From: Octopus sinensis
Lineage: Eukaryota
DNA: 64,000 bases
Reading direction: 5' to 3'
Assembly: GCF_006345805.1 (NCBI RefSeq)
Contig: NW_021836126.1
Location: 62,001-126,000 of the forward strand
The notes beneath the pieces are model-generated. The model ran no database searches. It was not told the DNA's origin and saw only the letters and a list, made by a program, of their open reading frames with translations. Position numbers and translations under genes: made by a program. Within the stretch, counting starts at the first letter, position 1; each line of letters starts with the position of its first letter. Shown one piece after another: positions 22,441-50,425 of this stretch.

Positions 22441-23575
22441 TAGCTAGTTTTTTTTGATGATTTCTTAACCAACTATATTGAACAATCAAAAATCGTTTAT
22501 AACAAGAATTATAAGCCTCTCTGAATATCCTTACAAGCTATTTATAGTTCAAAAAGAATATTTTTCACCAAAAAACATTGTTTTAAATGATTATAGTTAA
22601 CCCCGTGTTAAATGAGTATAGATATGATCAATTTATAACCTCTGAAAATGGCTATTACGATTTCGAGAGACCCCAGAAACCGGTTCTTGGTTGTTTGATA
22701 ACAATAAATGTAAAATATATTCATTTTGAGCTATAAAGTCACAAAACTAGTTACTTTGCATAAAAGATTTTACAGCTCTAGCAAGTTCATTCATTTTATT
22801 ATATACTAAATTCTAAAACATTAAAAAACACTACAAAACCAATATTTCTTGATAAGCTCTGTCCGTTCTAGCATTGTATAGTGTATGGTTTTGAACAACG
22901 TTCTACAGTAGTATTAAGATATTACTGTGATATTTTCTATTTGTTGCCTATAAAAATTGAACATTTGAGTCGTGAATGTATTAACTGTTAAATGACCCCG
23001 ACATTCATTAAATAAGGAATCATAAGTGTTCTGAAATAAATATGACTGATTACTTTGATTCTAATCAATGTATTTTCATTTTCTGTCAATGATCCTTTCC
23101 GCGTAAGATTGCGATATAAGTAAGATACGCAATATTGCAAAGCGTTTTCCTAAAGATCTCAATATATAATATACTAGAGGAAAAGGGCTGTTTCCACTTG
23201 GCACTAAATATAAAGAGTAATAAATTTACCAAAATCAGGGCCTGTTGTATTAATCAAATTGACTATTTTTTTCTGAAATTAGTTATAACTAAAGTAAGTA
23301 CCCCACAAACAATTTTAATATTGTTATCAATTAAAGTTAAATTCAACTTGAGAACAAAATATTCCAACAAATCGACGTTTTGTATCTACACTATTAAAGA
23401 AATATCAATACGGTGCACTCCATGTTCATATCTCTATCTAATAATATATAACAAAAATATTGAACATGTGGAGCGAGGTTGAAAGATTAACGGATATGCG
23501 GAAAGAGCCTGACAGATTAAAAAATTGAAAATCATTATGAAAGGTCGGAAAATTGGGATTATATACTCTTATTTA

Positions 23576-23980
23576 GGTCATTTAATTTGAATTGCATTCC
23601 TGAAAATCATAAAGAGACTGTTTTTGCTTGTTCTTGATGATTTTATTGCTCTAAAGTAATGTACTAAAATTATTTTATGAGTAAATAGCTAATTTTATGA
23701 ATTATTTGAGCAATTCTTTTAATTTCATAATTTTAGCTTTTTTGAAGAATTCAGAAAATTCGAATTGATATTTTTTTATTTGGGTCATTTAATTTGAATT
23801 GCATTCCTGAAAATCATAAGAGACTGTTTTTGCTTGTTTTTGATGATTTTAATGTTCTAAAGAAATTGACTAAATTTATTTTATGAGTTAATAGCTAATT
23901 TTATGATTTATTTGAGCAATTCTTTTTGTTTCATAATTTTAGCTTTTTTGAAAAATTCAGAAAATTCGAATTGATATTTT
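23576..23980. repeat. Tandem duplication of a ~207-bp AT-rich unit
   Basis: ggtcatttaatttgaattgcattcctgaaaatcataa starts at 23576 and again at 23783; the two units align along their length. Confidence 0.9.
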
Positions 23981-24073: not shown

Positions 24074-25960
24074 GAAAAGATACAAAGTCTCTGTTGGATG
24101 TTTACAGGAGACAAAACTGCATGGGGGATTAGAAGAGGAACTGTCGGGCTATCACTTCATCTAATTCCGAAGTGAATGCAGACACTTTGGCCGAGGATTT
24201 GTAATAAAGAAGGAATTGAAACCAATGGTTCATCTCTTTTGGAGCATAAATGATCGGATTTGTGTACCTCAGATCAGCATGAATAAGCTTTTCCTATCTA
24301 AAAGCTTACTATCCATTATAATCGTATACGCACTCCACAGTGGATGGATTGAAAATGACCCTACTAAGATAGACTTGTTCCACTCTTGCCTGTCTGAAGC
24401 TTATTCTGAACTTGTTCACTCGTCAACAACTATCATTGCTGGCGACCTTAACGCCAAAGTGGGATTACGAAGAAACCTTCATGGAAAAACACGGGAGGGG
24501 AATAAGGAACGTGGCAGGAACATTACTTGCCGATAACTATAGGAAATGCCTTGATACGTATTTGGGAAGTGTGGAAACAAACCAACCATTCTTCAAACTT
24601 GGGGGACAAATCCAGGAATCAATAAAAGGAGCAGCGGAGAAACAGCTCATGGACACAGAAATGGTTACCACATCACCAAATGGAACAACTGAGATATTCT
24701 TCTTGTGAATAAACAAAATATCTATTTGGCTACAATATTTAAATACGGAGGACAAGCATATCAAAGAAAAAAGTGGTCGGAAAAGATCGAATATTAAGAA
24801 GAAGATCAAGAAGTGGTGTCCTATATGTCAAGGAAGGAGGCTGAGATACAGATCAAGGCCATGGAAGTCTTGAAATGTATTATGAGGCGATCAGATTATT
24901 ACGAGGACGTAAACACAGACAACCACTAATCATAAATGACAGACGAATTGCAGATTCCGCAGAATTAGCAGAACTAATCTCCGGCCACTTCGATAAACTG
25001 TTGTTCCACCATTTAAATGTTCAAAAATGCGACATACATTCTTGGCTACTCGATTAATTGTCAGAAATTAATGGAAGTCCTCGCAGGATTCCTTGATGAA
25101 TCTTCTATCCGGATGATCAGAGCACTCTTATCAGAAACCTATCTGTCGGTCAGGGTACGAGACAAGTGCTCTAAACCATTTGAAACAACATCTGAAACAC
25201 CTCAAGGGGATCCGTTATACTGTTTGTCATATATCTGGAAGCTGCATTGAGAGAATTAAAACCATACTATAAAGGAAAGATCAATGTGGTGGCATACGCG
25301 GATGACGTGGATTTTATTCCTTCCGACAGGGACGCTCTGGAAAGTCTACTGGAAATGATGCCAAACAGACGAACAAGACGTGATTATGCGAAAAACACAT
25401 GCAAACAGTGCACTACACAGCTTAAAGGAAAATTGGCTAAAACGCAAAAGACTCAGCATAAAAACACGGATACGACTATACAATTCACTAGTGAAGCCTA
25501 TACTCCTATATAACGCCGGAACTTGGGAACCTTCCGCTACAGACAATGACAACCTAGACTCTTTCCATAGAGATCACCTCCGACGTACTCTAGCCTCCAA
25601 GTGGCATTCAAGGCTGAGTAGCAGAACAGTTTCATCAAGCAAACAAATCTCGATCGAAATTACCGAATCCAGATGGAGGCTGTTTGGACACATTCTAAGG
25701 ATGGATTTGGACACCGGAAAACGCCGCTATGGAGGACTATTTCGAAGCTGGGGGCCATCGTTTCCGTGGACGACCAAAAAATACTCTCTCGAGTACGCTG
25801 GATAGAGACCTAAAGAGGGCTGGTAGAGAATTGAAGAACGAGGACGATCTCGATGCACTACGGGACGTCGCCAAGATCGCGGGAAATGGAATAAACTAAT
25901 TACTCGTATTGTTTCCTGTGCTGCACAAGCTTTGTCATGATCCATAGCATCGCAAAAGTG
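24074..25960 (+). mobile_element. Degenerate RTE-clade LINE (copy A)
   Basis: APE motifs CLQETK and IIAGDLNAKVG; RT motifs PQGDPL and AYADD; C-terminal KPILLYNAGTW and WRLFGHILR. Many deletions. Confidence 0.85.
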
Positions 25961-26002
25961 CCTATAATAATTATTATCGCCCCCGGGTTGAAAACACCTA
26001 CT

Positions 26003-26051
26003 CTATACCATATCTGAAACCGTAGACCCATCACTATGGATCACCGAAGCT
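26003..26051 (+). other. 5S rRNA-like 5' fragment (also at 45442-45490)
   Basis: ctataccatatctgaaac...gatcaccgaagct resembles 5S CCATACCAC.TTGAA...GATCACCGAAGT. Confidence 0.35.
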
Positions 26052-26935
26052 TGTTAGCGCCTATTCTGCACATAATCCGCCTCAAAAATATATTTGAAAT
26101 GGAAAAATTCTGATATCCGTCATTTTTTAATTCTAATATCCGCCACAAATAATCAAAGGTTATTTAATCAACTCTAGAAATTTTGACGTTAATGGTGTTA
26201 TTTGATTAAATGAATAAGTAAGACTCATTTTTAGCAAATGTGAGAGACTTTACTGTATAGCGTTTTCCCAGCTTTAAAGTAGAAAGCATAAACAGTAGTG
26301 TTAACCCTTCAAACATTATTATTTCCGACGAAATTTTATGGAAAATGATTCCATATTTATTCATCTCTGCAAAAACAAATGTTTCTGCTATTTACTGGAG
26401 GCACTGTCTAATAAGGCGAGTTTTCAAAATTGGCTCTTCCATTTTTCACACGCGCACAAACTGGAAATATTTTTTGCTTAGTTCAATAGTAGTGTCAATA
26501 TTTTGCCTCGTCAGTATTTTCACAATTTGTTTTACTGTGTGGTGAAAGTCTTAGACACCTGTTAATAGTACTATCCGATATTCAGAAAACATCATGTTTT
26601 TTAACTTTGATTTGTCAGTAATAGACTAAACTAAGAATTTATTGCTTGTATAAATCATTCAATTTGAAAAAATAATCATTTTCTCAATTGACAAAGTATT
26701 CGGCTTATGGAGATTGAGGCATATTTAATAGTCATTTATTTCTTTTTAGATTTTCTACTAATAGAGCGTTCAACAATCAGTTTTTTGACTGCAAGAAATA
26801 TAGTATTTCTTTTTCGTCGATTAATAGCTCTTACTCTAACACACAATTTCCCACATAACATCAATGCCTGCTTATATTTAGAGCTTTGACAGTAATATTT
26901 CTCAACAACAACCCAGAAATAAACAAGAAAAAGAA

Positions 26936-27648
26936 TTATCGATTATTTTTACCAGCCCGTTCAATTTCATCCCTACGTTTGACAGCATATGAATTGGTAG
27001 TGTTCTAGGGGATGGTGAGAAGAGTGACCTTGTAGGCATTGATGACCTCATCGGCGTAGCACTCCACGATTGTCTTCTGACTTCGGAAGGCTGCCTTCCT
27101 GGCACCCACAGCAATGTTATAAATGGCCTGATTCACTCGGCGGAGAGGGGACACGTCCACCGACTGTCTCCTCACACTCCCCTTCCTCCCGATCCTCGTC
27201 GAGTCCTCTCTCGGCCCGCAGTTCTCGATTGCCACAACCAGCACTTTCACCGGGTTCTATCCTTTAAACACATTTTGGACTTCGTTGAGGAGGAGGTTGA
27301 TTATCTCCAAGGCATGTTCCACGATTTTCATGGCTTTGAGCTTCTTTCCGTTATTCCTTCCGTGTCTCATCAGAGAACAAACACACCGCTCCACGATGAA
27401 GCAACTCGCCTTCCGGAATTTCTTGACTTGGTATCTGCCTGCACTGTGGGGGACGAAGGTCTCCAATAATTTGATGTATGGCTGGGTTTACACACCACAA
27501 TCAACCATCAAATGAATCTCCACTTTTACTTCATTCACGTCCCATTTACCAAACAACTTTACACGTGTGTCCTTGGGGGACTCGACCAACATTTCTGTTT
27601 GAGTATTCTCAATGTCTGCCTATTTGTGTTACTTAAATGCACCACCAT
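26936..27648 (-). CDS. RPS5: 40S ribosomal protein S5 (uS7), copy A
   Basis: M|ADIE..KLFGKW..|PHSAGRY..GRNNGKK..|[28 protein letters not shown]..|[15 protein letters not shown]. Four introns of 26, 24, 24 and 24 nt. Confidence 0.97.
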
Positions 27649-28317
27649 AACTCAGATACTATCACGTGAATATTTATTAATTGTTTTAAATGTATTTATT
27701 AAAACTTGTCATAAATAATTAAATAATACACGACTTCTTTGTCGTTTAATTTTTTTGAGATTGCGATTCGAAATTGGTGGTTGGTTTTCATCGTTTCGAA
27801 ATGATCTGCTATTAGTTCGTCTTATAGATTGAAGACTTTTAGAACTTCTGCTTTTACCGACGGGGTTTAAAATCTTGCATTTTTATTGCGGGACTCAATT
27901 TTTCAGGGGAAGTTTTGATGGCTGTTCTTTCTATTCGCAGTTTGAACTTTAGTTAATAACTTTTTGGATTTCCAATTTTTGTTTTCCTAAGATAATCCAT
28001 TGCATCTAGTTTTTATTTAATATGGAGAATGATGGAAATAGAGTCGTAACTAACTTGGAGACAGAGGATCAAAAAATGGTGTTGGTTACTTCCTACTCTA
28101 AAAGGAGTAGATTAACCTCTAGCGGACAAGGTCGGATTAACATCAATTAAATAATACTAACTTTACTATTTTACTTTTTCTTTTCTGATAAAATGATGAG
28201 TTTAATGTTAATCCTTTAATTTTTAAAGTTTTCCTGATTGTTATTACTTGTATAATCAAATTCCAAAAACAAAATTTGATGGTAGGTAGATAAATAACTA
28301 AGAAGATAGTTGAGAAC

Positions 28318-28420
28318 CTAACGGTCACTCAACGGTCACACCCATCAGATCTAAGCGGTCGGACTCGTTTGGCAAGATAACAGTCCTCGGATGGGTGACC
28401 CTTTCTCCGATGTGTCTAAG
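28318..28420 (+). other. Degenerate 5S rRNA-derived sequence (pseudogene or SINE3 head), copy A
   Basis: cccatcagatc-taagc (box A-like) and cagtcctcggatgggtgacc (box C-like) in 5S order. Too decayed to call a functional 5S gene. Confidence 0.55.
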
Positions 28421-29188
28421 TAATTCACACAAATAAAGTTAATGGCAATTTGGAATCCCCTTGTGCAAGTTTGCCTTTAATTCTGATTGATGGATGTAAC
28501 ACTGATTAGAGATAAGAAATGTAACAAGGAAATATCCGAATAAATAATTAGGTTAGTTAAATAGTGGAATTTGAATATTTGATTAAACTCCATCATTTCC
28601 GCATATCATATTTATTGAGGAATAAGAACAGGAGTTGCAATCTATTGTGAGTAAACTAACCCACCATTTGCTTGCTCAAATATTACTGTTGCCTCGTGAA
28701 ATTCACTTGCTTCTATTTGCAATCTCTTTTCTGTAAATATGTTGGGAAGCGTAAACACCACAGTTGACGTTTTCGAAATCCTTATATGAGAATATTTAAC
28801 TATATATTATGGGTTCAGACTTTTCTGTGAATATGCACATTTTCTGCGTTACATCAATACTACACAGTAAATAATTTAAAATACTAAATTTTTAGCTCAC
28901 GACTGAGTTCCGAAAATTTAATGTCTTGGACACAAATCTACAGCCCTTTCTAATACTATTAAAGTGAGAGTAGACCAATAAAAAACGGTATATATATATC
29001 AACTGTCCTTCCCAGAGCCATGTCGGATACCCATCGGTCAGAACAGAATTCAATCAAATTGCTTACTGAGAAGTATAAATTTATGCAAATATTTTGTTTT
29101 CCTACCAACTTTACTTAAATTAACAAAATAGATAATTTCTTAAAGTCAATTATTCATATAAATAAAATATAAAAGCGTTTGTTGTGAT

Positions 29189-29916
29189 ATGGAGGACATT
29201 GATTTGCGTTTGGAAATACTGTCAAAATCGGAACTCTACGACGGTATATATGCATAAATAGCAGAAATGTACGACACGGTGATAGAAATGTTGGGGAGAG
29301 ACATAACCCCCACAGCAAAACAGCGAAATTACATATCGACGGCCTTCAAACACAAAATATCAGGTCCTCGGCAGTCGTGCAAGTCTTTGGGGTATTTGAA
29401 AGTGGAGGGGAAGGAGAAATACCGGCAGAGTGTATTGATAAACATGGAGGAGTAGTTGGTGGAGGAAATGAGGGACATTAGCTCGTGTGAGTTGAGTGTG
29501 ATGAAGGATCTGATGAGCAAGTCGACGGACGAGCACTCCCTCGTGTTCTATTTGAAGCAGTTGGTGTGTTTGTGGATGGCAGAGTGGGGGACTGTTGTCG
29601 GTACATGGCCGAGGTGTTGGAGGAGGACGAGCGGGAGACGTACGTGAGGGAGTCCCAACAGGCCTACGAACGGGCTTTGCACGTGTCCAAGGACTTTGCT
29701 GCCACTGACACGGCTAGGCTGGGACTGGCCTTGAATGCGTCCGTGTTCTATTTTGAGATTGTGGGGGATAGGGAGAAGGCGTGTGAGTTGGCCAAGGTCA
29801 CTTTCGACCAGGCCATTTGCTCGTTGGACTCCACCAACGGCATTATTGACCCAGACGTGGCACTCATTGTACAACTCATTCGAGACAACCACAAACACTG
29901 GAATTCACGTCCCTGA
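29189..29916 (+). CDS. Divergent 14-3-3 protein, paralog 1, copy A
   Basis: MEDIDL..SELYD|EMYD..STAFKHKISGPRQS..|..VFYLKQ|VGDCCRYMAE..RLGLALNASVFYFE..LIVQLIRDNHKHW. Introns of 21, 24 and 23 nt. Confidence 0.9.
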
Positions 29917-30229
29917 CTTTTTCCTTTATTTTAATATTTCTACTGTGGTTAACCTAATAGTTGTATTTGTAAAATAGGTATTATATAAATTGTTTCCTAA
30001 GTATAATTATTAAATAAAATCTCCAACTGATTGAACTTTTTTTTGACTGTAATGTATCAGCTTGTTCAGATTTTTCTAAAAATTCCATTAGCTCTTCATT
30101 TTCAGTATATTCGTAATCAACAAATTCACTATAAGATATTGGATCGTCAATTTGAAATTTCTTAATTATTTCTTCATAATTATTTTCGTAGTTCTTAGAT
30201 TCACTGTTGATTGTGATTGTTTCACATTT

Positions 30230-30950
30230 TATCCATTGTGCATGACGGAAACAATTTTTAATGGCCGTAGGAGTAACTTTATTCCAAGCGAAGAATGTTA
30301 ATGTCGCAGCAGTTTCAAGGGTGATTGCATTTATTGAATTCTGATAATTTTCCCCTGCCCCAACCTTTTCGATTATATCATTTAAAGTATTTTATAATTC
30401 CTTGATCCATTGGTTGCAAGACAGGAAGTTCTAAGAGGCAAAACAAGAATTTCGATTGAGTTTAACGTGACAATAACTTGATGAGATGGGCATTGATCTA
30501 TTGCAAGTAGAATTTTTCTTTTTTTCTTCACAAGTTCACAATCAAAATCATTAAGCCACTTGTTAAGAATTTCACGGTTCATCCATGCCTTAGTGGAATG
30601 GGTGTAGGTAACATATTTTCTAATGTTGAAATTTTTAAAACACCTCGGACTTTTAAATCTTCCTATCAATACAGGCCTTCTCTTATCGGAACCAGAACAA
30701 ATTGCGCATAATAGTAAAGAAAATCGATCGACAACCTTATTCCAGACTTTAATTTAGTGCACACACTTTTAGAAGGAATCGCCTTGTAAAAACACCAGTT
30801 TCATATGCATTATAAACATTGTCCAATCCATATTGTTCAATTTTTAAACTGATTGTTTCATTAAAATCAGCAATAGATTTTTCATCATGATTTACTGATC
30901 CACTGTCTCCGTGAAATTTTCTTAACTTGATACCATTTCGTAATGTTAAT
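30230..30950 (-). mobile_element. pogo/Tigger DDE_1 remnant (also at ~51470-52160)
   Basis: FHGDSGSV..NVYNAYETG, IGRFKSPRCFK..KAWMN..RKILLAIDQCPSH. Lies between the two 14-3-3 genes in both copies. Confidence 0.8.
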
Positions 30951-31110
30951 TAATTTAACTTACAATTAAATAAAAAATTATTTTTCATAATACTTGAGGA
31001 GCGGGTAATATTTTCACTGTGGGTAACCTAATTGTATTTGTAACAAATAAATATTTTTACTGTGGGCAACCAAATAATTGAATTGGTAATAAAATAGATT
31101 GTTAGTGTGA

Positions 31111-31895
31111 ATGAATATTGACGAACTGAACCTGAGACTAGAAGTGTTAGCAAAGGCGGAGTTATACGACTGTAATAAGCAAGCCTGACTGTTAGACATG
31201 TACGACATTGTGATCGAACTGCTGAGTCTAAACATAATCCCCACTCCTAAGCAGAGGAACTACATGTCCGTGGCCTTCAAACACAGAATATCAGCCCTAC
31301 GACAGTCGTGCAAGGCCATGAACAGCCTGTGCAGAAACTACGGAGTGGAGGAAGACAAGGAGGGCATGGAGTGCGTCCACAAATACACCAAATTGGTACT
31401 CCTCCACCCGCAGGCCAGATTCAGGACGAAATGGAGTCCATTTGCAACACACAGATCGGCATCATCAAAGACTTAATAAAGAAATGTGACCAAGATCAAT
31501 CACTTGTGTTTTATTTAAAGCAGTTAATTAATTAATTATTTATTTTTAGATTGGGGGACTGTGGACGATACATGGCCGAGGTCCTCTCGACGGATGCCCG
31601 CCAATACTACGTGGACGAGTCCAAGGAGGCATACGAACAAGCCCTGTCCATCGCCCAAAACTTTGCTGTGAACGACACTGGGCGACTTGGCCTGGCTCTC
31701 AACGCCTCGGTCTTTTACTACGAAATACTGGAGGAGAAGGACAAGGCCTGCAGTCTGGCCAAAATGACCTTCGATGAGGCCATTGAGTCCTTGGACGATT
31801 TGACTGGGTTTTTGAATTCGGAGGTGTCTTTGATCCTTCAACTGATTCAAGACAATTACAAAAACTGGACTGACAAGAAGGATGGGTGGAAATAA
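31111..31895 (+). CDS. Divergent 14-3-3 protein, paralog 2, copy A
   Basis: MNIDEL..AELYD|YMYD..SVAFKHRISALRQS..VFYLKQ|LGDCGRYMAE..RLGLALNASVFYYE..LQLIQDNYKNW. Same three intron positions as paralog 1. Confidence 0.9.
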
Positions 31896-31964
31896 TATTT
31901 TGGTTAATTAATTTCCTATTATTAGTAATAATTAATTAATAAACCAAATAAAATAAAGTGAGTG

Positions 31965-34834
31965 ATGAGGTCTGGTGGGTCAGTAGTGGCAGAATACGGC
32001 AAGCTGATAGAGGGGCACCCGTGGAAAGTGATATGGCTGAGCATAATATGGACAGCGTCAGTGCTGATGTGGAAGCAGGAAGGGAGGGTGTGTGAGGTGA
32101 GTGAGTGTAATGAGGAATAGGTGTTGGAGAGTGAAATGATATCAATAGTGGTGGTGAAGATGTTGGCAGTGTTGAACGTATACATAGAATTGGGGCGTGT
32201 GAGTGGGCACAAGTTACTAATGGGTGTGATAGTGTGATGAGGGGCAGGGTTCGTGATAATCTGCACATTCCTGACGGCCTTCACATTCACGAGTGTGGTA
32301 GTGATGGGGACACAAGTGCATTCAATGGCATTCTACATGGTGTTGGTGGACATGTCCAGGCCGTGTGAGTTGGTGGAGTATGCAATGCGGGAGGGGAGTG
32401 TGGTGGGGGCACTCAGTCGGGTGGGGCCAGCCATGGTCAAGACTGCGTTGGTGGAGGCGGGGGTGATCGGGTCGGGCATGTTGGTGGGTGTGGAGATGTG
32501 TCTGTTTGGGGCAGTCCTCGTCATTGTTAACTGCATTGCCTTCCTCACCTTCTTTCCCAGTTGTCTCGCCATTTCACGACTTTCTCTTTTTCTTGTACAC
32601 TCACTCCATTCACACACAGTCCATTCTCGTCCTCTTCGCCAGTCAGTACGACCACTTTACTCCACATTCACCACCCATCTTTACTCTCCCTCTCCTCCTC
32701 CTCATACTACTCCTCGCTCTCATTCCCACACCTACCAAGGGGAGGTCAGGGGAGTCACTGCTCACTGGGGGGAGACTACTAATGGACATCCGCCCTCCTA
32801 CTGAGGACACACCAATGGACTTGGCCTCTACTAAGGACTCACTACTGACTGAGGATACACCAATGGACTCCCCTTGTACTAAGGACTCACCACTAATGGT
32901 ATACCCCTCTTTACTCACAACATAGTCTCCTACTAGTGAGGATTCACTACTGACTGGGGACACTCCATTAATGGCCTCTTCTCCTACTAAGGACACACCA
33001 ATGGACTTATTCTCTACTAAGGAGTCACCACTGACTGAGGGCACTCCACTGACTGAGGATACACCAGTGGACTATACCGAGGACACTCCACTAATGGTAT
33101 CCCTCTCTCCTACTTACAACATAGTCCTCTCCTACTAAGGATACACCAATGGACTACCCTTCTACTGAGGACTCACTACTGTCTGGAGACATTCCACTAA
33201 TGGACATCCGCTCTCCTACTGAGGACACCAAGGACTCCCCTTCTACTGAGGGAACACTTATTGAGGACTCACCATTAATGGTATCCCCCTCTTCTACTCA
33301 CAACATAGTCCCCTACTACTGAGGGAACACTACTGACAGGGGACATACCACTAATGGACATCCGCCCTCCTACTGAGGACACCGAGGACTCATCTTCTAC
33401 CAAGGACACTCCACTAATGGTATCCCCCTCTTCTACTTACAACATAGTCCCCTTCTACTGAGGACATACTAGTAACCGAAGGCACACCAGTCAGTGAGGA
33501 CACACCACGAATGGACTACCCTACCAAGGACACTCCACTGACGGATGAGGAGTGGCTGAGTGTGTTGGGGAGTGGGGGATTGTCAGTGCACAGACTGGAG
33601 AGTGTGTTGTGTGAGTACGAGCGGGCAATCCGAGTGCGGAGGGGGCACTTATTGGGGAGGAGGGGTGAGGGAATCCCGTATGAGAAGTACGGTCATTACG
33701 ACAAAGTGGAGGGGGCGTGTTGTGAGAATGTGATTGGCTTCATTCCTGTCCCTCTCGGAGTGTGTGGGCCTCTTCTCCTCGACGGCAGGGAATATATGGT
33801 CCCTTTGGCTACCACCGAGGGATGTCTGGTGGCCAGTGTCAATAGAGGGTGTCGGGCACTCTACTTGGCCGGGGGGGTCACTGCTGTCCTCACCGCCGAT
33901 GGCATGACTCGCGCCCCCGTCCTCAGGATGCAGTCCGTCCACCAAGCCCACCAATTGAAGGAGTGGATTGACGCACATTTCCCTACTATCAAACACATCT
34001 TCGACGGGGGCAGTCGCTTTGCCAGACTCCACACCATTCACTCCACACAGGCCGGCCGCTTGCTCTACCTTCGCTTTACTGCCACCACTGGAGATGCCAT
34101 GGGAATGAACATGGTCTCCAAGTGTGCAGAGACTGTCCTCACTTTCCTCACACAACACTTCCCACACATCCAAGTCATCAGTCTGTCTGGCAATTTCTGC
34201 TCTGACAAAAAGCCGGGGGCCATCAACTGGTATTATGTGCCATCACTCCCCACAGGGTACAAGGCAGGGGCAAGTCCGTGGTATGTGAGGCCACTATTCC
34301 TGCCTCCGTCGTGTCCTCTGTTCTCAAGACCACCGTCCAGAGCCTGGTCGACGTCAACATGTCCAAGAATTTGGTTGGGTCTGCCATGGCCGGGTCGATT
34401 GGAGGGTTTAATGCCCACGCAGCCAATGTGGTGACTGCTCTCTTCATTGCCACGGGACAAGACCCCGCACAGAACGTGGGGTCCTCCAATTGTATCACTT
34501 TGCTCGAGTTTGGTGGCCAGTCTGGTGGGGATTTGCTGGTGAGTTGTTCAATGCCTTCCATCGAGTGCGGCACAGTCGGAGGTGGCACTGTCCTCCCCCC
34601 ACAAAAAGCCTGTCTTGAGGTTCTCGCCTTTTATATTGCCAGTTGTTGGGGGTGGCGGGAGCGCATAGTTCGAGTTATGGGGGGAATGCACGTGAATTGG
34701 CCAGAGTTGTGTGTGCCACTGTCATGGCCGGGGAACTGTCCTTGTTGGCCGCCCTTTCATCTGGCCATCTTGTGGCAGGGCATATGCGCTACAATCGATC
34801 TCAAGCTAATATAAATACTGCCAATCATTACTAA
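31965..34834 (+). CDS. HMGCR: HMG-CoA reductase (class I, membrane-bound), copy A, reading frame intact after splicing
   Basis: N-terminal HPWKVI; sterol-sensing domain ([26 protein letters not shown]); T/E/D/P repeat linker; catalytic [62 protein letters not shown]. Nine introns of 23-28 nt. Confidence 0.97.
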
Positions 34835-35568
34835 TTATTTATTTTGTCTAACCCTCCTCTGTTTACCTTCGATATACATAAATCCTCAATATTTTTCAAG
34901 ACAGGAACTTTTTTTTCCGCGAGCTTGATTTGCAGCGTCCGCCCATTTGGCGATGCAAAGGAATGGTGACATTACAGAACTGAAATACGAGTTGATATTA
35001 TTATTCCTACCGAATAAAAAATCCAATATAACAAGGCGGATTTATACGACAAAAAATCAAACCAGATATGGCTAATAGAGAAGCAGTTAAAGTTGAAAAA
35101 CACATAAATATAATTTTGTGGCAAATGAATTTTAAATAATTTACAAATTCAAAATATTTCCGATTGTCATTACCTGGGATGCGATCGCCTTCAAGTATTA
35201 TAAAATATATATGGATTGGCATTAAAGACAATGTTGTGTAGTACATCCAAACAATTGCATTAAAGAAGACATTATAAAGTATGTTCGTAGAATATAGTTT
35301 GAACCGTAATTACTAAAGCATTGATTCTCAACAAAAATTAGACAGTGTGGAACACTCATCCAAATGGAAATAATTAAAGGATGAGAAAACATGAGGTGAC
35401 AGAAAACGAATACTCTAAAGAAGAGCATATGGATGTCCCGGTATAGGGAGGACCAGTAAATTAAAAATTCAACTAATCTAATTTTTAATTTCTTTGTTTA
35501 AATACAAAAAGTAGTAATTTAAATTGTAAAAATCTAATAAATATATATTTAATTGATATTGCAAGAGT

Positions 35569-36060
35569 ATGTGGTTCACTGCCCCTCTAGTATATGCTAT
35601 ACTGTTAATGTACAAAAAACACGTGAGTCCGTTCATTGAAAGAGTGGCGAAAAAAGTGATGCAAAGACGAGCAAAATACTGGCAAGTCACTGAGGAGTTG
35701 ACTAAACTTCGTAAAAAATGTGAGTCCTTCAAACTGCCTCGTGATTTGGTGGAGCATTCCCTAACAAACAGACAAATCCACAAAACAAGAAAAGAAAAAG
35801 AAAATATAGGTTTGCCACTATAAAATTAATTATAGATAATATTATTAAAAATAAACTTAAAAAAATCAAATCCTTTTTTGTGTATTTTAACATCGTGTTA
35901 GAGGTGAGTTCCCAAAGTTTATTTGAAGGTGATTATTCCTCTAGTGCTGGTCAGTGAGTCACCTTCCTTGCACAACCTGTTCTGGCCTTTCTCAGGGTTC
36001 TGTGATTCGTTGGCTTGGCTCGGGATTTGCAGAGTTGCTATTTTTAATTTTTATATTTGA
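35569..36060 (+). CDS. GET1/WRB-like tail-anchored protein insertase receptor, copy A
   Basis: TM, then coiled coil EELTKLRKK..RQIHKTRKE|..KNKLKKIKSFFVYFNIVLE|VIIPLV..LFWPF..AWLGICRVA. Aligns by eye with WRB (LAKIKWVISVAFYVLQ..CWILVCNKV). Introns of 26 and 25 nt. Confidence 0.6.
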
Positions 36061-36129
36061 ATATTTTTTTTTTAATTAAAAATAAATTTTTTTTAATTTG
36101 GTGTCTTGTGGATATACTTTGCTAGACTA

Positions 36130-36593
36130 ATGAAAGGAGACCAGAACAGTCTAAAGAAAAAAAATATTGACTTTTTTAAAGAATGTGAGAAAATAGGGGA
36201 CTCTCTCCTCTCATTAAAGTCTGAGGCAGTGGACGTGGACAAACAACGGCACAGAAATCGTGAAGCAATTCGGTTATCCCATTAAGTATCATTCCAGTGC
36301 TCTAAAAGCACAGAAAACATGGATGTGGTTCAACAACATTTTTATCAAAACAGAAACAAAATCGGCTGTGGACCGACTGTGGGGAGGTTGGTTTATTTGG
36401 TCTCCTCTCAGACCAGACTTCGTTAGAACGAAGGATATGCCATATTCGGAAAGAAATGAAAGGACATGTGGACAGACTGAACGACCTCGGAATAGTCGAT
36501 GACTGTCCGTTTTATTCCGGGTTTGACCTCTTTTCTCTGTCCTCCTCTGATCTGAGACACGTCCATTTTAATTCACTGTTCGATTATACTTAG
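36130..36593 (+). CDS. PDRG1: PDRG1-like prefoldin-family protein, copy A
   Basis: EAVDVDKQRHRNREAIR|ALK..WMWFNNIFIK..G|DQTSLERRI..VDRL..GFDL resembles PDRG1 (VDLDTKRNQNREGLRAL..FGNMFIK..DQDHLDKEI..VNRL..GFNL). Two 25-nt introns. Confidence 0.75.
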
Positions 36594-36619
36594 TAGTAAA
36601 TTTCTGTTTACATTTCAAC

Positions 36620-36680
36620 ACGGCAGTTAAGCTATTCTATTACTTGGCTGGGTGACCGCCTGAGAACAGACAGTGTCTTG
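36620..36680 (+). other. 5S rRNA-derived 3' fragment (also at 57353-57410)
   Basis: cggcagttaagc..tattacttggctgggtgaccgcctgagaac versus 5S CGGAAGTTAAGC..TAGTACTTGGATGGGTGACCGCCTGGGAA. Confidence 0.6.
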
Positions 36681-37339
36681 CTATTCATTGTTATAAAGTG
36701 TTTTTTGTGTGACTAACTGGGGGATATTTCAATATAGAGAACAAGTAGTCGACATTGACAGTTGGAGGGGACTAAGGAGGTCACCCAGTCCATTTATACA
36801 AGTGTCGTTTATTTCAGTCGATACTGGCTGTAGTCTTTTTAAGTGGTTGAGCATTTCGAGGGAGTTGAGGGCGAGTAGAGTCCTCGGGGATGCAGGAATG
36901 TTTTCAGATAGGCTTTTATGAATAATATTCCTTTTTACACATTCATTAGGTAAATATCAAATATTTAACTTTTGTTTTAATTCATTCGGAAAATATAGAA
37001 AATTGTGTTGCGGCTAATCCTAATTCTTCAGGAATATTTGCGAATAGAGATGGAGTGTCCGACCGTCCTCCAATACAATTCCTGGGAGAAATAATTTCTT
37101 TGGCTTTTCTCTTTCCATACGTGATCTCTCTGGGGTCAGCCGGAGTCCAAATATACGGCTCAATTGACCAGCATTTCTTTTTTGGATTTTAAAAAAGTTG
37201 ACTCTTTGTGGTTTCGCTACTTTTTATACTCCCGTAACACTCAGACCAATGCTACAGTTATTAGATTCATAGAAGGCAATTTTAACGAGGCGGATCGACT
37301 TTTTAGAGATTCTGGGTTTGAAATCATCCGAGTTTGGTA

Positions 37340-37948
37340 GATAATAAAACAGAAATATGTAATCTCTTTGAAAATATTTTTTATATTATTGGTTCTCCAA
37401 TTATTTTGCAAACCGACAGTGGAAAAGAGTTTAACAGTTCATATATAGAACGAGTTATTTGATGAATTGAATAGACAATATTAAACAAATTACTTATGAC
37501 TACAATAAGACGGTCCATGCAACCACAAAGCATAGTCCATTTCACATTTTTATGAATTTTTGAAATATTTTATACAAAATATAAAACAACTTGAAAGGCT
37601 AATAATTTTTGAAGCAGAAGATAAAAACGCGGAAATTTGTTATCAAACAAAGTCGGATAATATTTCACCTGAAAATTTTGTTTGAAAAATATCAAAAAAC
37701 CAGGAGAGAAAATGAAAAGTAAAAGAAAATGGAGGTACGATAAAGAAAATATAAATATCGGGGATCATGTCATTATTAAACATGACATCGATGCTAATAT
37801 GAACAATCAAAGGTTTTCCTTATCTGATAATGTCGATACAACAAAATATAGAATTATCGAAAAAAATAATTACAACTATTCTTTGAAAGATAAAAATGGA
37901 AATGTTCATAAGAATATTAACATTTCTAAAATAAAAAAGTTCACGTAA
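37340..37948 (+). mobile_element. Integrase (Ginger/KRBA2-like) remnant (also at ~58150-58735)
   Basis: IIGSPIILQTDSGKEFN and YNKTVHATTKHSPF remnants. Confidence 0.65.
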
Positions 37949-38313
37949 CTTTAAAATTCGCGGCCGTAGGCCGTATAGGGGATTAGTTGAATTTTTAAAT
38001 CAAACCTTTTTGGGTTAGGAATGTTTTTTATTGACCTGTCAAGCTGATAAGTCATCACCTTGGTCGCTAGTGTGGGTCATCACTGCAACATTTGTCATTA
38101 ATTATTCATTTAGATTAATAACGTCATTTTTGTCCTATTCTCTAATAACTGACACGATCCATAACATTTCTGTTAGAAATGATTATATTTGAGTTGTCTC
38201 ATTTAATTATCCAAGATTGCATGTCAGTTTGTATGTTCTAATAACGTTTGTTCTGTTTTATCACGTCTGTTTCCGTTGGAGACTGCAGAATTGATGAAAG
38301 AATCACTTTTGAA

Positions 38314-39925
38314 CAGGGTTGTTAGATTTAAATCATTTGATTTTAATCAACAATAAAAATCAATGATTTAAATCATTAAAAAAAATCAAAAAAATCAAAA
38401 AAATCATTTAAATTTTTTTAAATGTCTGGAAGAAAGCGTGATTCTTTGTGGGCTTATTTTGATAAACGTATTATTCCTGGAAAGACCGGAAGTCGTGCCA
38501 GATGTCGTAATTGTGGGAAGGACATACAAGGTCTTGTATCTCGGATGAGGGCAGCATCATTTATTATGTCGAAGTAATATTGATATCCCTGAAAATATGC
38601 CGAGACCTGAAAGCGAATTTCCTCCAAGGATGAAGGACCATTCATTAATCAATTTCGTAACTACGACGACTTCATCTAAGAAAGATTTGATGGATCTGCA
38701 ACTCGCTAGATACATATTTTCTACAAACACTCCGTTTGCTGCTGTAGAACATCCCGAATTTGTCAAATTCGTCCAAATGCTTCTTCCTGGGTATCGTTTA
38801 CCCTCTCGTCATCAAATTGGTGGTACATTACTTGATCATGTGTACGACCAAATACATGAAGACTGTCGACAAAGACTCCAGGACAAAACAGTGTCTATGA
38901 TGTTGGACGGGTGGAGCAACATTCATAATGAACCCGTTATTTGTGTCTCGGTTGTGACATCAGATGGGGAAAATTATCTCATTGACACTGTGGACACTTC
39001 TGGATATAGCCACACTGCGGAATATCTTCAATCTGTTGCTTTAGCCTCCGCACAATTGGCTGAACAACGGTTTGGATGTAAAATCGGCAGTCTTGTAACG
39101 GATAATGCTGCCAACATGACTAAAATGAGACGGATAATGATGGAAGATGGCAATGAAATAATTACTTATGGTTGCTCGGCACATTATCTCAACCTTCTTG
39201 TGAAGGATGTCGAGGTAGCGGACGTTAAAGGAACTATTGTAACAATCAATAAATATTTCCGAAACGTCCATCTTCCAGCTGCATGGTACAAATCTAATGG
39301 AGGAAAAAAACTCGTTCTTCCGATTGATGTACGGTGGAACACTTTATCAGACTGTTTTCAATCTTATCTGGATAATTGGTCTATTATTTTGAGAACTTGT
39401 GAGGAACACAGAACGGATATTGATACAGAGATTTTTTCCAAGGTCCAAAATATTTCCCTAAAACGACGCGTTGAAGAATATCTGATGCTTATTAAACCAA
39501 TTGCTGTCGCTTTAGATAAAATTCAGAATGATTCTACCACGATTAGTCATGCTGTAGAAATTTGGAAAGAACTTGAACAGACATATATTGACAATGGATG
39601 TACGAATATTTTAGGAAAAGTGAGAATTCGAGCAAAACAAGCATTAACACCTTTCCACTTACTTGCGAATTTGATCGACCCGACATGTAGTGGGAAATCT
39701 CTTTCAAATGTTGAGATTGACATTGCATTGAGTTATTGTGCTCAATTTTCAGTGTTTATGTACAAAGAGAGAGGTTCTCTGATAAGCCAGGTGGAAAGGG
39801 TCGTTTTGAAATAAAGATCATTTAATTCAAAAAAATCTGATTTAAATCAAAAAAATCGTGATTAAATCAAAAAAATCAGATTTTTTTGATTTTTTTGAAA
39901 AAAATCATGATTTTTAACAACCCTG
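38314..39925 (+). mobile_element. hAT transposon (BED finger plus DUF659-type core), C-terminally deleted, copy A only
   Basis: TIR cagggttgtta / taacaaccctg; 8-bp TSD cttttgaa (38306-13, 39926-33). BED finger from ATG 38422 with a +1 frameshift; ORF 38597-39814 with LDGWSN, TDNAANM, CSAHYLNLL, DVRWNT. Confidence 0.93.
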
Positions 39926-40207
39926 CTTTTGAACTCGATGAATTTGAAAAGGTTCTCCGAAAGACTCATTTTTAATCTGTTTCATTCTCTAAATTTTAGC
40001 TACAATTTCTTTAGTCTTAAAACAACCAAAATCGCACAAATAATATAACTGTTAAAATTAATTGAGAAATTAGTTACGAACCCACAAAAACTCACAAACT
40101 GGCAATGGTATCTTGTTTCAGATTGAATAAAAAGAACAGATGCGTCAAGTCTTTATAAAAAGCAGTTCTAATGACTAATTTAAATCACTGGTAGTCCAAT
40201 CTGGTGA

Positions 40208-40672
40208 GTGGAATATGTGATGTACTACAACGACTGTGTGTCGGACGTAGTGAATGTGACTGAATTCGGCTTCTGCGACTTGAGGTGCAACATAACTCAG
40301 AAAATAGACTTTCGGGGGCAGCGTCGATTACCAGTGTGGTCATGTTGGGAGTGTCCGTGTACTGGAGTGCGACTATTTACGAGGCATTTACAGTAAACCA
40401 AATAACGGGTCCCAGAGATGCCTTGTGTCGGTTTGACGCTATAGTGGGAGGGACCTCCTTGTTGGTTTCCCTTGCATTCCTCTGCGCTCCTATCATACCG
40501 GCAAATCGACTTTGTCACAATGATCAGTATTGTGGAGAAAGTGGAGAAATCTGCTTTGTATTTAATGTTGGATTCGTTCCCCCCTGCTCTCGTATTTCCC
40601 ACAATATTGGGTCGACTGTTGTTTAGTGGGATGCATTCAGGCAGACTATTTTGGTTGGGTTATGAGTATTGA
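40208..40672 (+). CDS. Putative multi-pass membrane protein, unidentified, copy A only
   Basis: GC-richer coding-like stretch with several hydrophobic segments and candidate 23-nt GT-AG introns. Start and exon frames unresolved. Confidence 0.35.
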
Positions 40673-40854
40673 TATCCGAGGGTGGACTTGCCTTTCTTGT
40701 AGCAAGGACTCTCATAAAGACGTATTATCGTCGTTAAATGCGCCTCAGACGGGACATGAGATTTATTGTTAATTATACGGAAATTTAATTTTTTGAACAG
40801 ATTTGTTTATTTATATCAAGCCTAATAATATATCGTTTATGAGATAATCTATAC

Positions 40855-41470
40855 CAGAGGTTGTCAAACGGTGTGCCGCGAGACGATTTCTATACCATTT
40901 CCCATACTAAATGGGATTAATATCAAACTAAGTGGGATTAGCAAAAAAACTAAATGGGATTAACATCAAACTAAGTGGAATTAGCAAAAAACTAAATGGG
41001 AAATACACAAGTAAAAAATCTCATTCTGAATTTATTTTTCAAGTAAAATTGTTTATCATCCTCAAACTTGAAGGATTCATACGATTTTCTGAGTCTATAT
41101 TTTTGCCTTTTAGGAATTTGACAATATGGGATTAATAGCAATTTGCATGGAAGTCTTGGCAAATGATGCTATGGTTCCTAGCAAACTAAAAAGACATTTT
41201 ACTTCCAAGCATCCGCACTATTTCGCAAAATCTGTGGATTATTTTATCCATTTGAAAAAACAATTTGGAAAAAAGTGATATTGATGATATATGTAACAAC
41301 AATAATAATTAAGATTTGATTTTCAGTATTAATAAAAATTTGGGCATTAAATTACCAATTTTGTACTTAGTTTTACATATCTTAAAAATTTATTTTTTTT
41401 TATTTTTAATGTGTGCCGTGGATTATTTTTTTAAGATTAGTGTGCCGCGATAATTATTTTTAAAAAGCTT
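40855..41470 (+). mobile_element. Buster-type hAT deletion derivative with an internal ~43-bp tandem repeat
   Basis: End cagaggttgtcaaac with gtgtgccgcg subterminal motifs; EVLANDAMVPSKLKRHF..KHP remnant; repeat at 40907-41005. Confidence 0.6.
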
Positions 41471-43059
41471 TGATCTATACACTAAGAGGGAAAAGAGCGC
41501 TCCTTTTGTGGAGATCTATCTCAGAAATAAGAAAATGTTCACCTTTGTTTGGCCAATATTTGAAAGTTTAGATTAACTCAGAATAAAGTGAATAACAAGT
41601 GTTACAAAATTTGAATCGTAAATTTGATTTCTATTCTTATTAAAGATAAGCAAATTTTGTGGTTTGTTTTTTGTTTTTATGAACATTCTGGTCTTGACTA
41701 AGATTGTTCTCAATGAGTTTTTTGACAATTTTTAATTTAATTTACGACACAACTAAACAACTTGATTGTGTCTTTACACTTTCCTGGTTATTTTCCGTAT
41801 CCTCAGTTGTCTCAGAGTTGTCTAAGATATTAAATGTAGGCGAATTAAAATATATGATACAATTCCTCAAATTAAATGGTTTACTAGTGCATTGTAAAGA
41901 AGAACTTTCTTTTTCACGTCAAGTTTTCATTGGTTAGAATTATTATATTTGGAATTCCTATCTATACTTTTTCATCAATTTTGACCGAATTAAAAATTCT
42001 CGAATAAACTTCAAACCTGTAGCGTATTCTATTCAACTCTGATTTTAAAGCACATTTTCGAGGATATCTCATTAATCGTAAGCCCCACGAACGCCGATAC
42101 TTTACAGTCACCACTTTCTTTGCAGAGAATTACAGCGAAAAAATTAAAAAATTTTTTTTCGATAATGTCTGCACACGTGTCGTCCGAAACTAGCAACTTC
42201 AAACTCAAGACGGGAAAACTAATAATTCCACCACTGCGTTTCCTAGCGTACCTAAGAAGTTTAACTACATTTCTGAAAATTGAAATTACAACGATTTCTA
42301 AAGATTTATTGTTCCCCTAAACTTATGTATTTTAAGAAAGCAAAATTCCATTATCCGAGAAATGGAATAAGTTTCCGAAAAAGCCGTATGAGAGCAAAAC
42401 TTAAATTATTGACAATAAAAGTCTGGACTATACGGACGTCAAAGAGACAGCTAAAAATGGTCCAAATAGATCTTCCTGCAGAATTATTAATTGGCACGTA
42501 TATTCGAGACGGTGCTTTGAAGTCTTGATTTACAAATTTGATTGTGCATAGCTTTTATAATTATAATAGATTCAAATTAAATGAAAAATTGATTTGAATT
42601 TAAATTGGAGACCAAAATAGAAATCAATTTCTATCAAAGACAATATGAGGCACATTTACAATTCGATTAATATAAAAGTCCAAAAATAATTAAAAAATAA
42701 TTTGCTGTCCATTAAACTGTAAAAGATAATACAACTTAATCATATAGTCAGGAAATGCTGTCATTCCTTCTGCTAGTTCTCTGCCTTCTGTTAGAAAACC
42801 AATTGCGTATTGTGTCTTCTGTCTTGTCAAGATGAGTGGCCGTCATTTGAATGATATGTCTGTCAGGCCTTCTTGTAGTTTGAAAAATTAGTTCCAAATA
42901 TGCTATATCATTCTCCATGAATGTTGTACGCCTTTTCCGATTCCTAAAACGCCTTGGATAGTGTTTGTCAGGTAGACGGGAAAAGTCTTCACTGCGGACG
43001 GGATTGGCCGAATTGAGTATTTGTCGGTCAAGGTTCTTATGTCATAATATTTTTGTAAA

Positions 43060-48120: not shown

Positions 48121-49390
48121 TAATTACACAAATAAAGTTAATAGCAATTTGGAATCATCTTGTGCAAGTTTGCCTTTAATTCTGATTAATGGATGTAACA
48201 CTGATTAGAGATAAGAAATGTAACAAAGAAATATCCGAATAAATAATTAGGTTAGTTAATTAGTGGAATTTGAATATTTGATTAAACTCCATCATTTCCG
48301 CATATCATATTTATTGAGGAATAAGAACAGGAGTTGCAATCTATTGTGAGTAAACTAACCCACCATTTGCTGCTCAAATATTACTGTTGCCTCGTGAAAT
48401 TCACTTGCTTCTATTTGCAATCTTTTTTCTGTAAATATGTTGGGAAGCATTGGGTTAGCTTAGGAAAATATTTTTGATAACAGTGTTTGACTTCCTCGAG
48501 GCGGATCTTTTGTATTCATGCACAAAAAGATCTCTAGTGAGTATCTCGGCTGATGCTTGCCGATCTAGTCCTTATAGCGATCAAGAAAACCTAGAATTGG
48601 TAATTGTCTTTGGTCACCCATTTGAATTCCAGATGGAAAGTATACTGTATTTGGGTTCGACTTCAGGCATCTCTTATGTTTTTCGAAGCACAACTGACCG
48701 GATAATATGCCTTTTGTATTTTAAGGAAATCTGGGTGGTTTTTCGTAGTACTTTGAGACAATTTCGTCCCATTTAGGCAGAAAAGGATTATTTTCATTAA
48801 CCGCAGATTTCTAACTGATATGTTCTGTTTATTATATTCCCGTTTACTATATGGCAAATCAAAAAACAATTTAAATGAAAAATATAGGCTTTATTGGTAT
48901 CAATAACCAACCTGCACTTGTTTAGTACTGTTATATATTTATTTTATTTATTCAACAAACTGTTACATAATAGTATTTCTGTCGGAAGTCTGACTTAAAC
49001 AACGCCCAGGGCATTGTCAATACCGCACTACTTCTTTGCTCGGTCCTGAAAAGGACTTTTAGTCGAAATTCAATAAACTATAATGATTAATAATGATTCG
49101 AAAATGGGTGGATACAATGTGGTCACTTTTGGCAGTTCTTTTGTTCTGTTGAAGGTTACCCTTTGTTGGCTATAGACATTGGCGGAACCAAATTTGAGTT
49201 AAAACCTAATGACTACATTTTTCCTATTGACTGAAAATAGTGTTTATTAAATTGATTTACTAGATTTAATAGATTTAGTGTTTATTAAATAGACCCACGG
49301 TAAAAGTGCATAGATTTTTAATAAAATTATGAAAATTATTTAAAATGAAGAAGCCGAATGGTTAGTGGATTAACGAATCGAAAGATCAAA

Positions 49391-50310
49391 TTAAAGCAAG
49401 TTATTTTCGCAATCAATGAGCAAGCACAGGTCTTTCTCATTTTTTAGTTTATCTCGAGAGAAAGTAGAAAAATAATCATATGTTTTAAAATTAGCTAAAT
49501 CGTACTAACGATATTTTTTAAAAATAAATATACTTTATAATTTTTAAGTTTCAATAATGCATTCGGATTGGTATTTTCAAGCATAAATATAGCATAATGT
49601 GAAAAGTCGGTTGTAAACACTAATTTATAACAACTAGTCGGGATCCAGACATTAGAATTAATTTTCTAAAATATGATTAAATAATATTCAATCACCGGTA
49701 TTAAATTTTGTTTATCAAAATAAGAACCAGTAATCACATACAGTTCTTTTTTAGTAGCTAGTACATAATCCCTAATAATTTTTTCTAATGCTTTCCATTG
49801 TTTTCTATTAAATCTTGGCACCTGGGGCATCATATTTGAATAATAGAAGGTATCACACATTGCTTGCTAATCAAAAATCAGGCATTTTAATTAACTTGAT
49901 TAAATTTAAAATCAGCAGCAGGGACTGCATGCCCTCTGTCATATCCTGAATGACCATAATCTACATTTTTTGATTGAAACTGAATTGGAACGTTTTCATC
50001 CACTTTAAAATTGAATTTTGATTGTTTAGCAGGACCTCAAAATGATTTAATTATATTAAACCTAAAGCATGTTGTGGTTTTAATTTATAAACCGTCCAAA
50101 TCAGCACTTTTGCCATTGGGTATATTCGAAAATATTTTGCCATCTGGAAATTTCCAATAGAAATAAACGTTATATGATTTGCAGCATCTCCATTGAAATC
50201 ACAGTCTCTTAAAAACCTAATTTAAAATAAGCATTGCTTCAAAACTCTTCTTCCAAGTTACAGTCTCTTTGTATCACTAAGTCAGCAAAAAGTAGGACAA
50301 GTGAAAACAT
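49391..50310 (-). CDS. DNA/RNA non-specific endonuclease (EndoG/NucA beta-beta-alpha-metal family), intact, copy B only
   Basis: Six exons in one frame: MFSLVLLFADLVIQ..DYGHSGYDRGHAVPAAD..|QAMCDTFYYSNMMPQVPRFNRKQWKALE..YVITG..WIPTSCYK. Introns of 29, 26, 29, 30 and 29 nt. Confidence 0.9.
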
Positions 50311-50425
50311 TATAATAAGGTCATATTTTTTTGTTTTCCTACCAACTTTACTTAAATTAACAAAATAGATAATTTCTTAAAGTAAATTATTCATATAAAT
50401 AAAATTTAAAAGCGTTTGTTGTGAT

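Follow-up and report, generated by a model that had tools for sequence, protein, structure and literature searches.

An intron of 27 or 28 nucleotides probably multiplied with its coding repeat in the linker of a putative dicyemid HMG-CoA reductase gene

Two HMG-CoA reductase genes with a repetitive linker

We analyzed a stretch of 64,000 nucleotides (the window) from a contig filed under Octopus sinensis (NCBI RefSeq assembly GCF_006345805.1, contig NW_021836126.1, positions 62,001 to 126,000, forward strand). The window contains a head-to-tail duplication of about 19 kb, each unit of which carries a gene for HMG-CoA reductase (HMGCR). Between the membrane and catalytic domains the gene encodes a linker of repeats, and within this linker near-identical introns of 27 or 28 nt are found four times in the upstream gene (copy A) and twice in the downstream gene (copy B). 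The features are collected in Table 1.

Table 1 Features of the HMGCR locus, numbered from the first base of the window
Feature	Position	Strand	Remarks
Duplication unit A	24074–42840		Self-BLAST, blocks of 92–99.5% identity to 43491–64000; sharp left boundary
Duplication unit B	43491–64000		Extends to the window end
14-3-3 gene	31111–31895	+	Directly upstream of HMGCR A; introns of 24, 23 and 27 nt; tblastn and junction reading
HMGCR gene copy A	31965–34834	+	10 exons, 9 introns, 878 residues, intact
Intron 1 of A	32097–32120	+	24 nt, GT..AG, membrane domain; takes out an in-frame TAG
Intron 2 of A	32224–32247	+	24 nt; takes out two in-frame stops
Intron 3 of A	32595–32619	+	25 nt; supplies the +1 change from membrane-domain frame to linker frame
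Linker of A	32776–33537	+	217 codons of T/D/P/S/E-rich repeat plus four introns
Linker intron A1	32899–32925	+	27 nt, GTATACCCCTCTTTACTCACAACATAG, phase 0
Linker intron A2	33097–33124	+	28 nt, phase 0
Linker intron A3	33281–33308	+	28 nt, phase 0; identical to B2
Linker intron A4	33420–33447	+	28 nt, phase 0; ortholog of B2, 1 difference
Intron 8 of A	34230–34255	+	26 nt, catalytic domain, phase 2
Intron 9 of A	34620–34642	+	23 nt, catalytic domain, phase 0
HMGCR copy B	53175–55636	+	Structure as A but 7 introns; linker 53985–54339
Copy B introns	53307–53330, 53434–53457, 53804–53828, 54084–54110, 54222–54249, 55032–55057, 55422–55444	+	
Linker intron B1	54084–54110	+	27 nt, TACTGAC branch-like motif
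Linker intron B2	54222–54249	+	28 nt
G4 run in B	53669–53672	+	G5 in A (32459–32463); frameshift, stop directly after VEAG, membrane domain

The nine introns of copy A measure, in order, 24, 24, 25, 27, 28, 28, 28, 26 and 23 nt, and the spliced coding sequence has a length divisible by three and no internal stops. Residues 507–867 of its product match Pfam HMG-CoA_red (PF00368; E 7.9e-136, profile positions 18–368 of 368), and over their whole length the 415 C-terminal residues can be aligned with human HMGCR (1DQ8, E 2.1e-156). The catalytic motifs ENVIG, DKKP, GQD and GHL..H, which we take to correspond to human E559, K691, D767 and H866, are all kept in the alignment with 1DQ8 and eight animal proteins. 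With its full-length catalytic domain and these motifs, copy A encodes a class I (eukaryotic) enzyme. At the other end of the protein, the first 236 residues can be aligned with the membrane domains of eight animal HMGCRs, including the HPW motif, transmembrane helices (TM) 2–6 and the invariant columns. These alignments bear out the animal-type HMGCR identity that the original prediction for this DNA had assigned to the gene.

Introns 1, 2, 8 and 9, outside the linker, could be placed by homology. The junction of intron 1 is consistent with the alignment to animal HMGCRs, and that of intron 2, KLLMG/FVII, aligns with KYLLG/IAGV of the homologs. In the catalytic domain, the junctions of introns 8 (INW/VQGRGKS) and 9 (ACLE/LLGVAGA) align with human INWIEGRGKS and ACLQMLGVQGA, respectively. 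As neither the 26-nt nor the 23-nt junction leaves a gap against the human protein, introns of such size are validated by homology in HMGCR.

Six introns that restore the linker frame

The six linker segments are 27 or 28 nt long and have the form GTAT…ACTNACAACATAG. All begin with GTAT and end with ACT(C/T/G)ACAACATAG; an ATG codon precedes each (phase 0) and TCN follows. The motif CT(C/T/G)AC, about 8 nt before the AG, fits the branch-site consensus yUnAy, and with GT..AG ends, a branch-site motif and a frame restored by their removal the segments have the sequence features of U2-type introns. Across the six copies the sole variable base in the 3' half is the n of yUnAy (CTCAC, CTTAC or CTGAC). 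This base is position 19 of the 28-nt form (33299, 33438 and 54240), and the rest up to the AG is invariant. Variation confined to the branch n is the pattern that would be expected of purifying selection on a minimal intron. Within the window, the 28-nt motif with up to three mismatches was found only at the linker sites, with none expected from shuffled sequence. A scan of metagenome contigs for the exact pattern of the intron plus its flanks gave no match.

Without splicing, the linker contains at least 10 stops in a fixed frame. Each 28-nt segment displaces the open frame by +1 and each 27-nt segment ends with an in-frame TAG, which rules out unspliced read-through or retention of the 27-nt introns. 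Only when all the segments are taken out does a single open frame run into the catalytic domain, with 217 linker codons in copy A and 100 in copy B. The five linker exons of copy A are open exactly in the frames predicted by splicing each donor to its nearest acceptor, and the other frames are stop-rich. From this frame logic and the homology-validated tiny introns of HMGCR we infer that the linker introns would be spliced. The original prediction had given six intron positions, each after an ATG codon, and one continuous frame into the catalytic domain; the positions proved correct to the base, and the frame is as described.

On the minus strand a stop-free antisense frame of 142 residues (32643–33071) crosses the linker repeat and intron A1. 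This frame most likely results from the codon composition of the repeat and does not represent a gene.

The intron was copied together with flanking exon

The linker of copy A is composed of sub-repeats of 18–48 nt within module repeats of 139–198 nt. Intron starts are spaced 198, 184 and 139 nt apart in A and 138 nt apart in B, and the exons between them (171, 156 and 111 nt in A, 111 nt in B) are all divisible by three. The order of elements is pre-X1-i1-Y-X2-i2-y'-Z1-i3-Z2-i4-tail in A and X-i1-Z-i2-tail in B. When the six units were aligned, all shared a conserved block that spans the intron and reaches from about -22 to +16. Because homology crosses both exon-intron boundaries, the intron was copied with exon sequence and not inserted alone. 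Boundary-crossing homology and head-to-tail spacing identify the array as a tandem duplication of exon plus intron, or a coding minisatellite, and the tandem exon-plus-intron units that had been predicted are thereby confirmed with the periods given above for A. The intron copies are 82–100% identical, versus 52–85% for the paralogous exon flanks. The anatomy of the locus, the logic of its frames, the homology of the modules and the homology-validated tiny introns in HMGCR are direct observations.

The sub-repeat ACTGAGGGAACACT is present at 33243–33256 and at 33318–33331, on either side of intron A3, and is not found in the Z module of B. The pair could be the trace of a conversion tract or of a smaller duplication, 75 nt in length, by which the intron was carried along.

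Source of the contig

Twelve distinct introns, all of 23–28 nt, are found in two genes, HMGCR and the adjacent 14-3-3 gene, the latter providing a local control for intron size. Dicyemids have a median intron of 27 bp (PMC6543705), and among animals introns below 30 bp are known only from dicyemids and myxozoans (PMC13644364). The window introns accord with the size distribution of Dicyemida (median about 27 bp, most below 30 bp). The window is about 35% GC (about 30–38% outside genes) and dense in transposon remnants; Dicyema japonicum, which was collected from Octopus sinensis, has a genome of 36.7% GC with 49% repeats (PMC6736024). BLASTP matches cover up to 98% of the copy A protein, and no cephalopod protein was present among the best 120 matches to the full protein in a collection of 5.8 billion proteins, in which the best identity was about 60%. 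Given the ultra-short introns, the GC content of about 35%, the transposon load and the lack of a cephalopod-level match, the contig is most likely DNA of a dicyemid kidney parasite assembled together with the Octopus sinensis genome. An octopus origin of the gene is ruled out by the intron size and by the lack of a cephalopod-level match. The 388-kb contig VCDQ01001570.1 (388,483 bp, GCA_006345805.1), labeled Octopus sinensis, thus appears to be parasite DNA that was carried into RefSeq.

Differences between the two copies

The genomic linker is 762 nt in copy A and 355 nt in copy B. The difference of 407 nt agrees with the expectation that B would have only two linker introns and a linker about 400 bp shorter. 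Between the duplication units we counted 281 substitutions in 13.9 kb (2.0%), 30 single-base insertions or deletions (indels), 11 of them in homopolymers, and 19 longer indels. HMGCR codons that differ between the copies number 5 of 246 in the membrane domain, 11 of 416 in the catalytic domain and 17 of the 67 in the orthologous distal linker. Large unit-specific blocks lie at 38294–41882 (only in A) and 48449–50328 (only in B). The block of A contains an open reading frame (38549–39811) for 421 residues with a DUF659 domain (E 6e-15) and is probably a hAT-type element; the 1.9-kb block of B has no match elsewhere in the window. Directly left of the duplication boundary at 24074 are two copies of a 206-nt tandem repeat (23545–23980, 91% identical).

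Comparison of the modules bears on the direction in which intron number changed. At about 81.5% identity, Z1 and Z2 have diverged from each other much further than A has from B, and dozens of columns distinguish X1 from X2. The Z module of B agrees with Z1 at 8 positions and with Z2 at about 14 positions and in a 15-nt indel and has no private changes, and the X module of B is a mosaic of X1 and X2 with two or three private substitutions. At least four switches are needed for each B module, and a single unequal crossover is therefore too simple a source. As the divergence of Z1 from Z2 much exceeds that of A from B, the module duplications would, at roughly equal rates, be older than the A/B split, and the two-module state of B would then be derived through unequal recombination or conversion. 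These patterns would be better explained by B having contracted or been converted, or by a collapsed consensus, than by a recent gain in A, which is the least favored direction. A repeat that does not behave like a clock, in which A expanded and then quickly diverged by conversion, would also give the mosaic pattern.

In the mechanism that we propose, a single spliceosomal intron of 27 or 28 nt would have sat within one repeat module, and tandem duplication of modules of 139–198 nt would have multiplied it. Unequal recombination or gene conversion among the modules would then alter linker length and intron number together, giving the four introns and 217-codon linker of copy A and the two introns and 100-codon linker of copy B. 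We think it probable, with moderate confidence, that the locus is a dicyemid HMGCR gene in which the linker intron was multiplied by module duplication and its copy number changed by recombination or conversion.

The RefSeq model of the locus

The sole protein match of 100% identity was the RefSeq entry P0121 (LOW QUALITY PROTEIN, HMGCR-like, Octopus sinensis, 451 residues), which derives from the same contig; over a 7.6-kb stretch of that contig the window matches at 100% identity. It was also the only match when the linker plus the start of the catalytic domain was the query. This model (33278–34834, plus strand), the only public one, starts at the internal ATG 33278 and joins donor 33281 to acceptor 33447, thereby skipping an exon; it then loses VQ where the 26-nt intron lies and continues across the 23-nt intron in a wrong frame. 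Standard annotation pipelines make no provision for introns of 23–28 nt, which explains why P0121 is truncated and mis-spliced. As all sites are phase 0, any donor is in frame with any later acceptor, and isoforms of different linker length produced by alternative pairing are possible.

Alternative explanations

Several points weigh against multiplication of a spliced intron by module duplication with subsequent recombination or conversion. No protein spanning a linker junction was present in the 5.8-billion collection, and a junction-spanning piece of 133 residues as the query matched nothing there. No sequence labeled Dicyema matched directly in the collections searched. The exon-skipping join of P0121 makes longer splices conceivable. 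In the assembled copy B, a 1-bp deletion shifts the membrane-domain frame into an immediate TGA; the G4 run is either a real, very recent pseudogenizing change or a homopolymer sequencing error, and with the TGA following directly we saw no compensating alternative splice. A and B differ by 2.0%, a value near that between alleles of D. japonicum, for which a heterozygosity of 1.24% has been reported (PMC6736024), and chained haplotypes or strains are therefore possible. Finally, a collapsed or mis-polished consensus would likewise give a mosaic such as that of B, which switches several times and has no private changes. Thus A and B could be haplotypes or co-infecting genotypes that the assembler chained, or the B linker could be a faulty consensus of four modules, and although we judge this unlikely, we give it appreciable weight. 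The DNA came from a parasite population within octopus tissue; at each site the B modules agree with one of the paired A modules and essentially no change is private, as in a mixed consensus, and the 1-bp deletion lies in a homopolymer. Against artifact stand a contig free of Ns with a sharp duplication junction (43490/43491), the large non-homologous blocks that separate the units, substitutions far outnumbering 1-bp indels with only a minority of the latter in homopolymers, and the fact that long reads normally span a repeat of 0.8 kb. The earlier claim of intron gain or loss by tandem duplication between recent paralogs therefore stands for the module duplication and the differing intron number, whereas paralogy itself is not established at 2.0% divergence. 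A recent gain in A, from a two-module ancestor like B with modules and introns duplicated after the 19-kb duplication, is in our estimation improbable. It would account for the scarcity of private changes in B as a retained ancestral state, the differences specific to Z2 are concentrated in a single 22-nt patch matching another sub-repeat of A, which suggests fast conversion-driven change in A, and even orthologous parts of the distal linker are about 10% diverged, indicating that the repeat is not clock-like. Nevertheless, modules duplicated after the split should at equal rates have diverged less from one another than A has from B, and the divergence of Z1 from Z2 and of X1 from X2 contrasts with a difference of less than 1% between the two copies in the flanking coding sequence.

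The two other explanations concern the introns themselves. The repeat might not be translated as modeled, with longer introns removing most of the linker or with the catalytic domain made alone from an internal ATG. The donors and acceptors are all equivalent and in phase 0, the internal exons are divisible by three, and P0121 has just such a start and splice. We consider this quite improbable, however, as the five linker exons are open in exactly the nearest-neighbor frames and the other frames are stop-rich, copy B independently follows the same frame rule, introns of 23–28 nt are the norm in HMGCR, in the neighboring gene and in dicyemids generally, and the P0121 record is flagged LOW QUALITY and mishandles two validated catalytic-domain introns. 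Alternatively, the near-identical introns could be independent insertions of a mobile, introner-like sequence at similar target sites, as the greater likeness of the intron copies than of their wider exon flanks might suggest. To this we give hardly any credence: homology continues through both exon-intron boundaries (-22 to +16), the motif occurs in the 64-kb window only in the two linkers, and 27–28 nt is far below the size of any described introner.

A possible origin of the intron in the coding repeat

Three of the introns, A4, B2 and A2, look like the start of their downstream exon over some 20 bases (CCTCTTCTACTTACAACATA versus CCCCTTCTACTGAGGACATA, 16 matches in 20). When each intron was compared with its own downstream 30 nt against 2000 shuffles, P was 0.0005 for A4, 0.0015 for A2 and 0.008 for B2, and 0.11–0.67 for A3, B1 and A1. 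Compared with all linker exons, three copies gave P of about 0.02–0.03. Similarity scores were 15–21 for the linker introns versus 12–18 for unrelated tiny introns. This modest evidence hints at an origin of the linker intron from a coding repeat unit that had diverged. In the most specific form of this idea, a unit like ATG GAC TCC CCT TCT ACT GAG GAC ATA became ATG/GTA TCC CCC TCT TCT ACT yAC AAC ATAG/ and was then multiplied and deleted with the minisatellite; intron number would behave like a variable number of tandem repeats in living dicyemid populations, and alternative pairing would give linker-length isoforms. We offer this scheme as a speculation that is rather unlikely to hold. On that reading, birth of an intron from a repeat unit is possible because in this animal 27 nt with GT, yUnAy and AG suffice for splicing.

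The linker and the membrane domain

In composition the linker is 67% P/E/D/S/T, with a net charge of -36 in copy A and -17 in copy B. This agrees with the acidic T/E/D/P-rich repeat that had been noted, and the repeat follows the last hydrophobic segment and precedes the catalytic domain. Relatives of the linker were not detected in the 5.8-billion protein collection, and the lone Pfam match, a sub-threshold extensin-like low-complexity hit, was dismissed as meaningless. Mammalian HMGCR linkers are likewise rich in P/E/S/T. By a crude estimate the linker region spans 90–454 residues across 118 animal HMGCRs, and both copies fall within this range. Like other animal HMGCR linkers, that of the present gene lies between the membrane and catalytic domains, is poorly conserved and varies in length; unlike them, it is an internally repetitive array with introns of its own, and the usual TM7–8 and PRxLEEC helix are not recognizable. 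We take the linker to be a lineage-specific, acidic, PEST-like coding minisatellite that would act as a disordered tether, and the length of this spacer may affect turnover, stability or regulation of the enzyme.

The membrane domain (31965–32775) is shortened to about 236 residues and is without the CGWNY loop and other loops. The TM7–8 region of copy A cannot be aligned, leaving the domain short of eight recognizable helices; one or two novel hydrophobic segments replace TM7–8 and the PRxLEEC helix. No match to the sterol-sensing domain (PF12349) or to PF02460 was found in copy A with E up to 10, unlike the full-length animal homologs listed, all of which carry both. These features suggest a reduced membrane domain that may not be regulated by sterols. 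The original prediction had the linker join a degradation-control membrane domain to the enzyme. The position is right; degradation control was borrowed from mammals and sits poorly with the absence of a Pfam sterol-sensing domain and the apparent loss of TM7–8.

Comparison with known systems

Iterated intron-exon modules were reportedly described in spider silk genes by Hayashi and Lewis in 2000. In the silk genes Flag and MaSp2 an intron has spread with its exon through a repetitive coding array, and the introns within one gene are highly similar, the array being homogenized by recombination (PMC3522626). Propagation of the HMGCR linker intron with its exon through a repetitive coding array is of the same kind. 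However, silk introns run to hundreds or thousands of bases and lie in kilobase modules, whereas the linker introns are 27–28 nt in modules of 139–198 nt, and the HMGCR repeat is a spacer of a metabolic enzyme and not a structural protein. The locus also resembles the tandem-duplication model of Rogers in that duplication within a gene alters intron number, but in that model a new intron arises from an exonic AGGT, whereas here a complete intron was copied with its exon. The exon flanks are ...AATG/TCC... at all six sites, giving ATG/TCC borders, and AGGT is absent. Introns made of short (24-bp) coding repeats are mentioned for fission yeast (PMC4974935, citing PMC3629103), and the modest likeness of A4, B2 and A2 to following coding sequence may be comparable. 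With 23–28 nt and minimal signals, the introns are like the ultra-short introns of Dicyemida in general (PMC6543705, PMC6736024, PMC13644364). The dicyemid intron papers that we consulted give genome-wide statistics only, and we found none that describes introns varying in copy number within a coding repeat.

Propagation of introns through coding arrays is a known process and tandem exon duplication is common; the HMGCR linker is a tidy example, which illustrates a known mechanism and opens no new question. What is unusual is the scale (introns of 27–28 nt in modules below 200 nt), the probable dicyemid host and the presence of two near-identical copies that are two introns apart. Clear recent changes in intron number are scarce, and mechanisms of gain and loss have been argued from few cases. 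Here two copies of about 98–99% identity are set apart by two complete introns, and the mechanism, be it duplication, contraction or conversion of modules, can be seen in the sequence. Moreover, as these introns are near the minimum size for splicing and nearly every base is a signal, their copies act as a small natural mutagenesis series, in which only the branch n and a few pyrimidines vary.

Neighboring features

A scan of the whole window against Rfam matched no family. In each duplication unit two divergent 14-3-3 genes lie upstream of HMGCR (29190–29916 and 31111–31895 in A, plus strand; 50430–51153 and 52320–53105 in B), and these genes likewise have introns of 23–27 nt. Between the two 14-3-3 genes is a remnant of a pogo/Tigger-like DDE_1 transposase on the minus strand (29984–30753).

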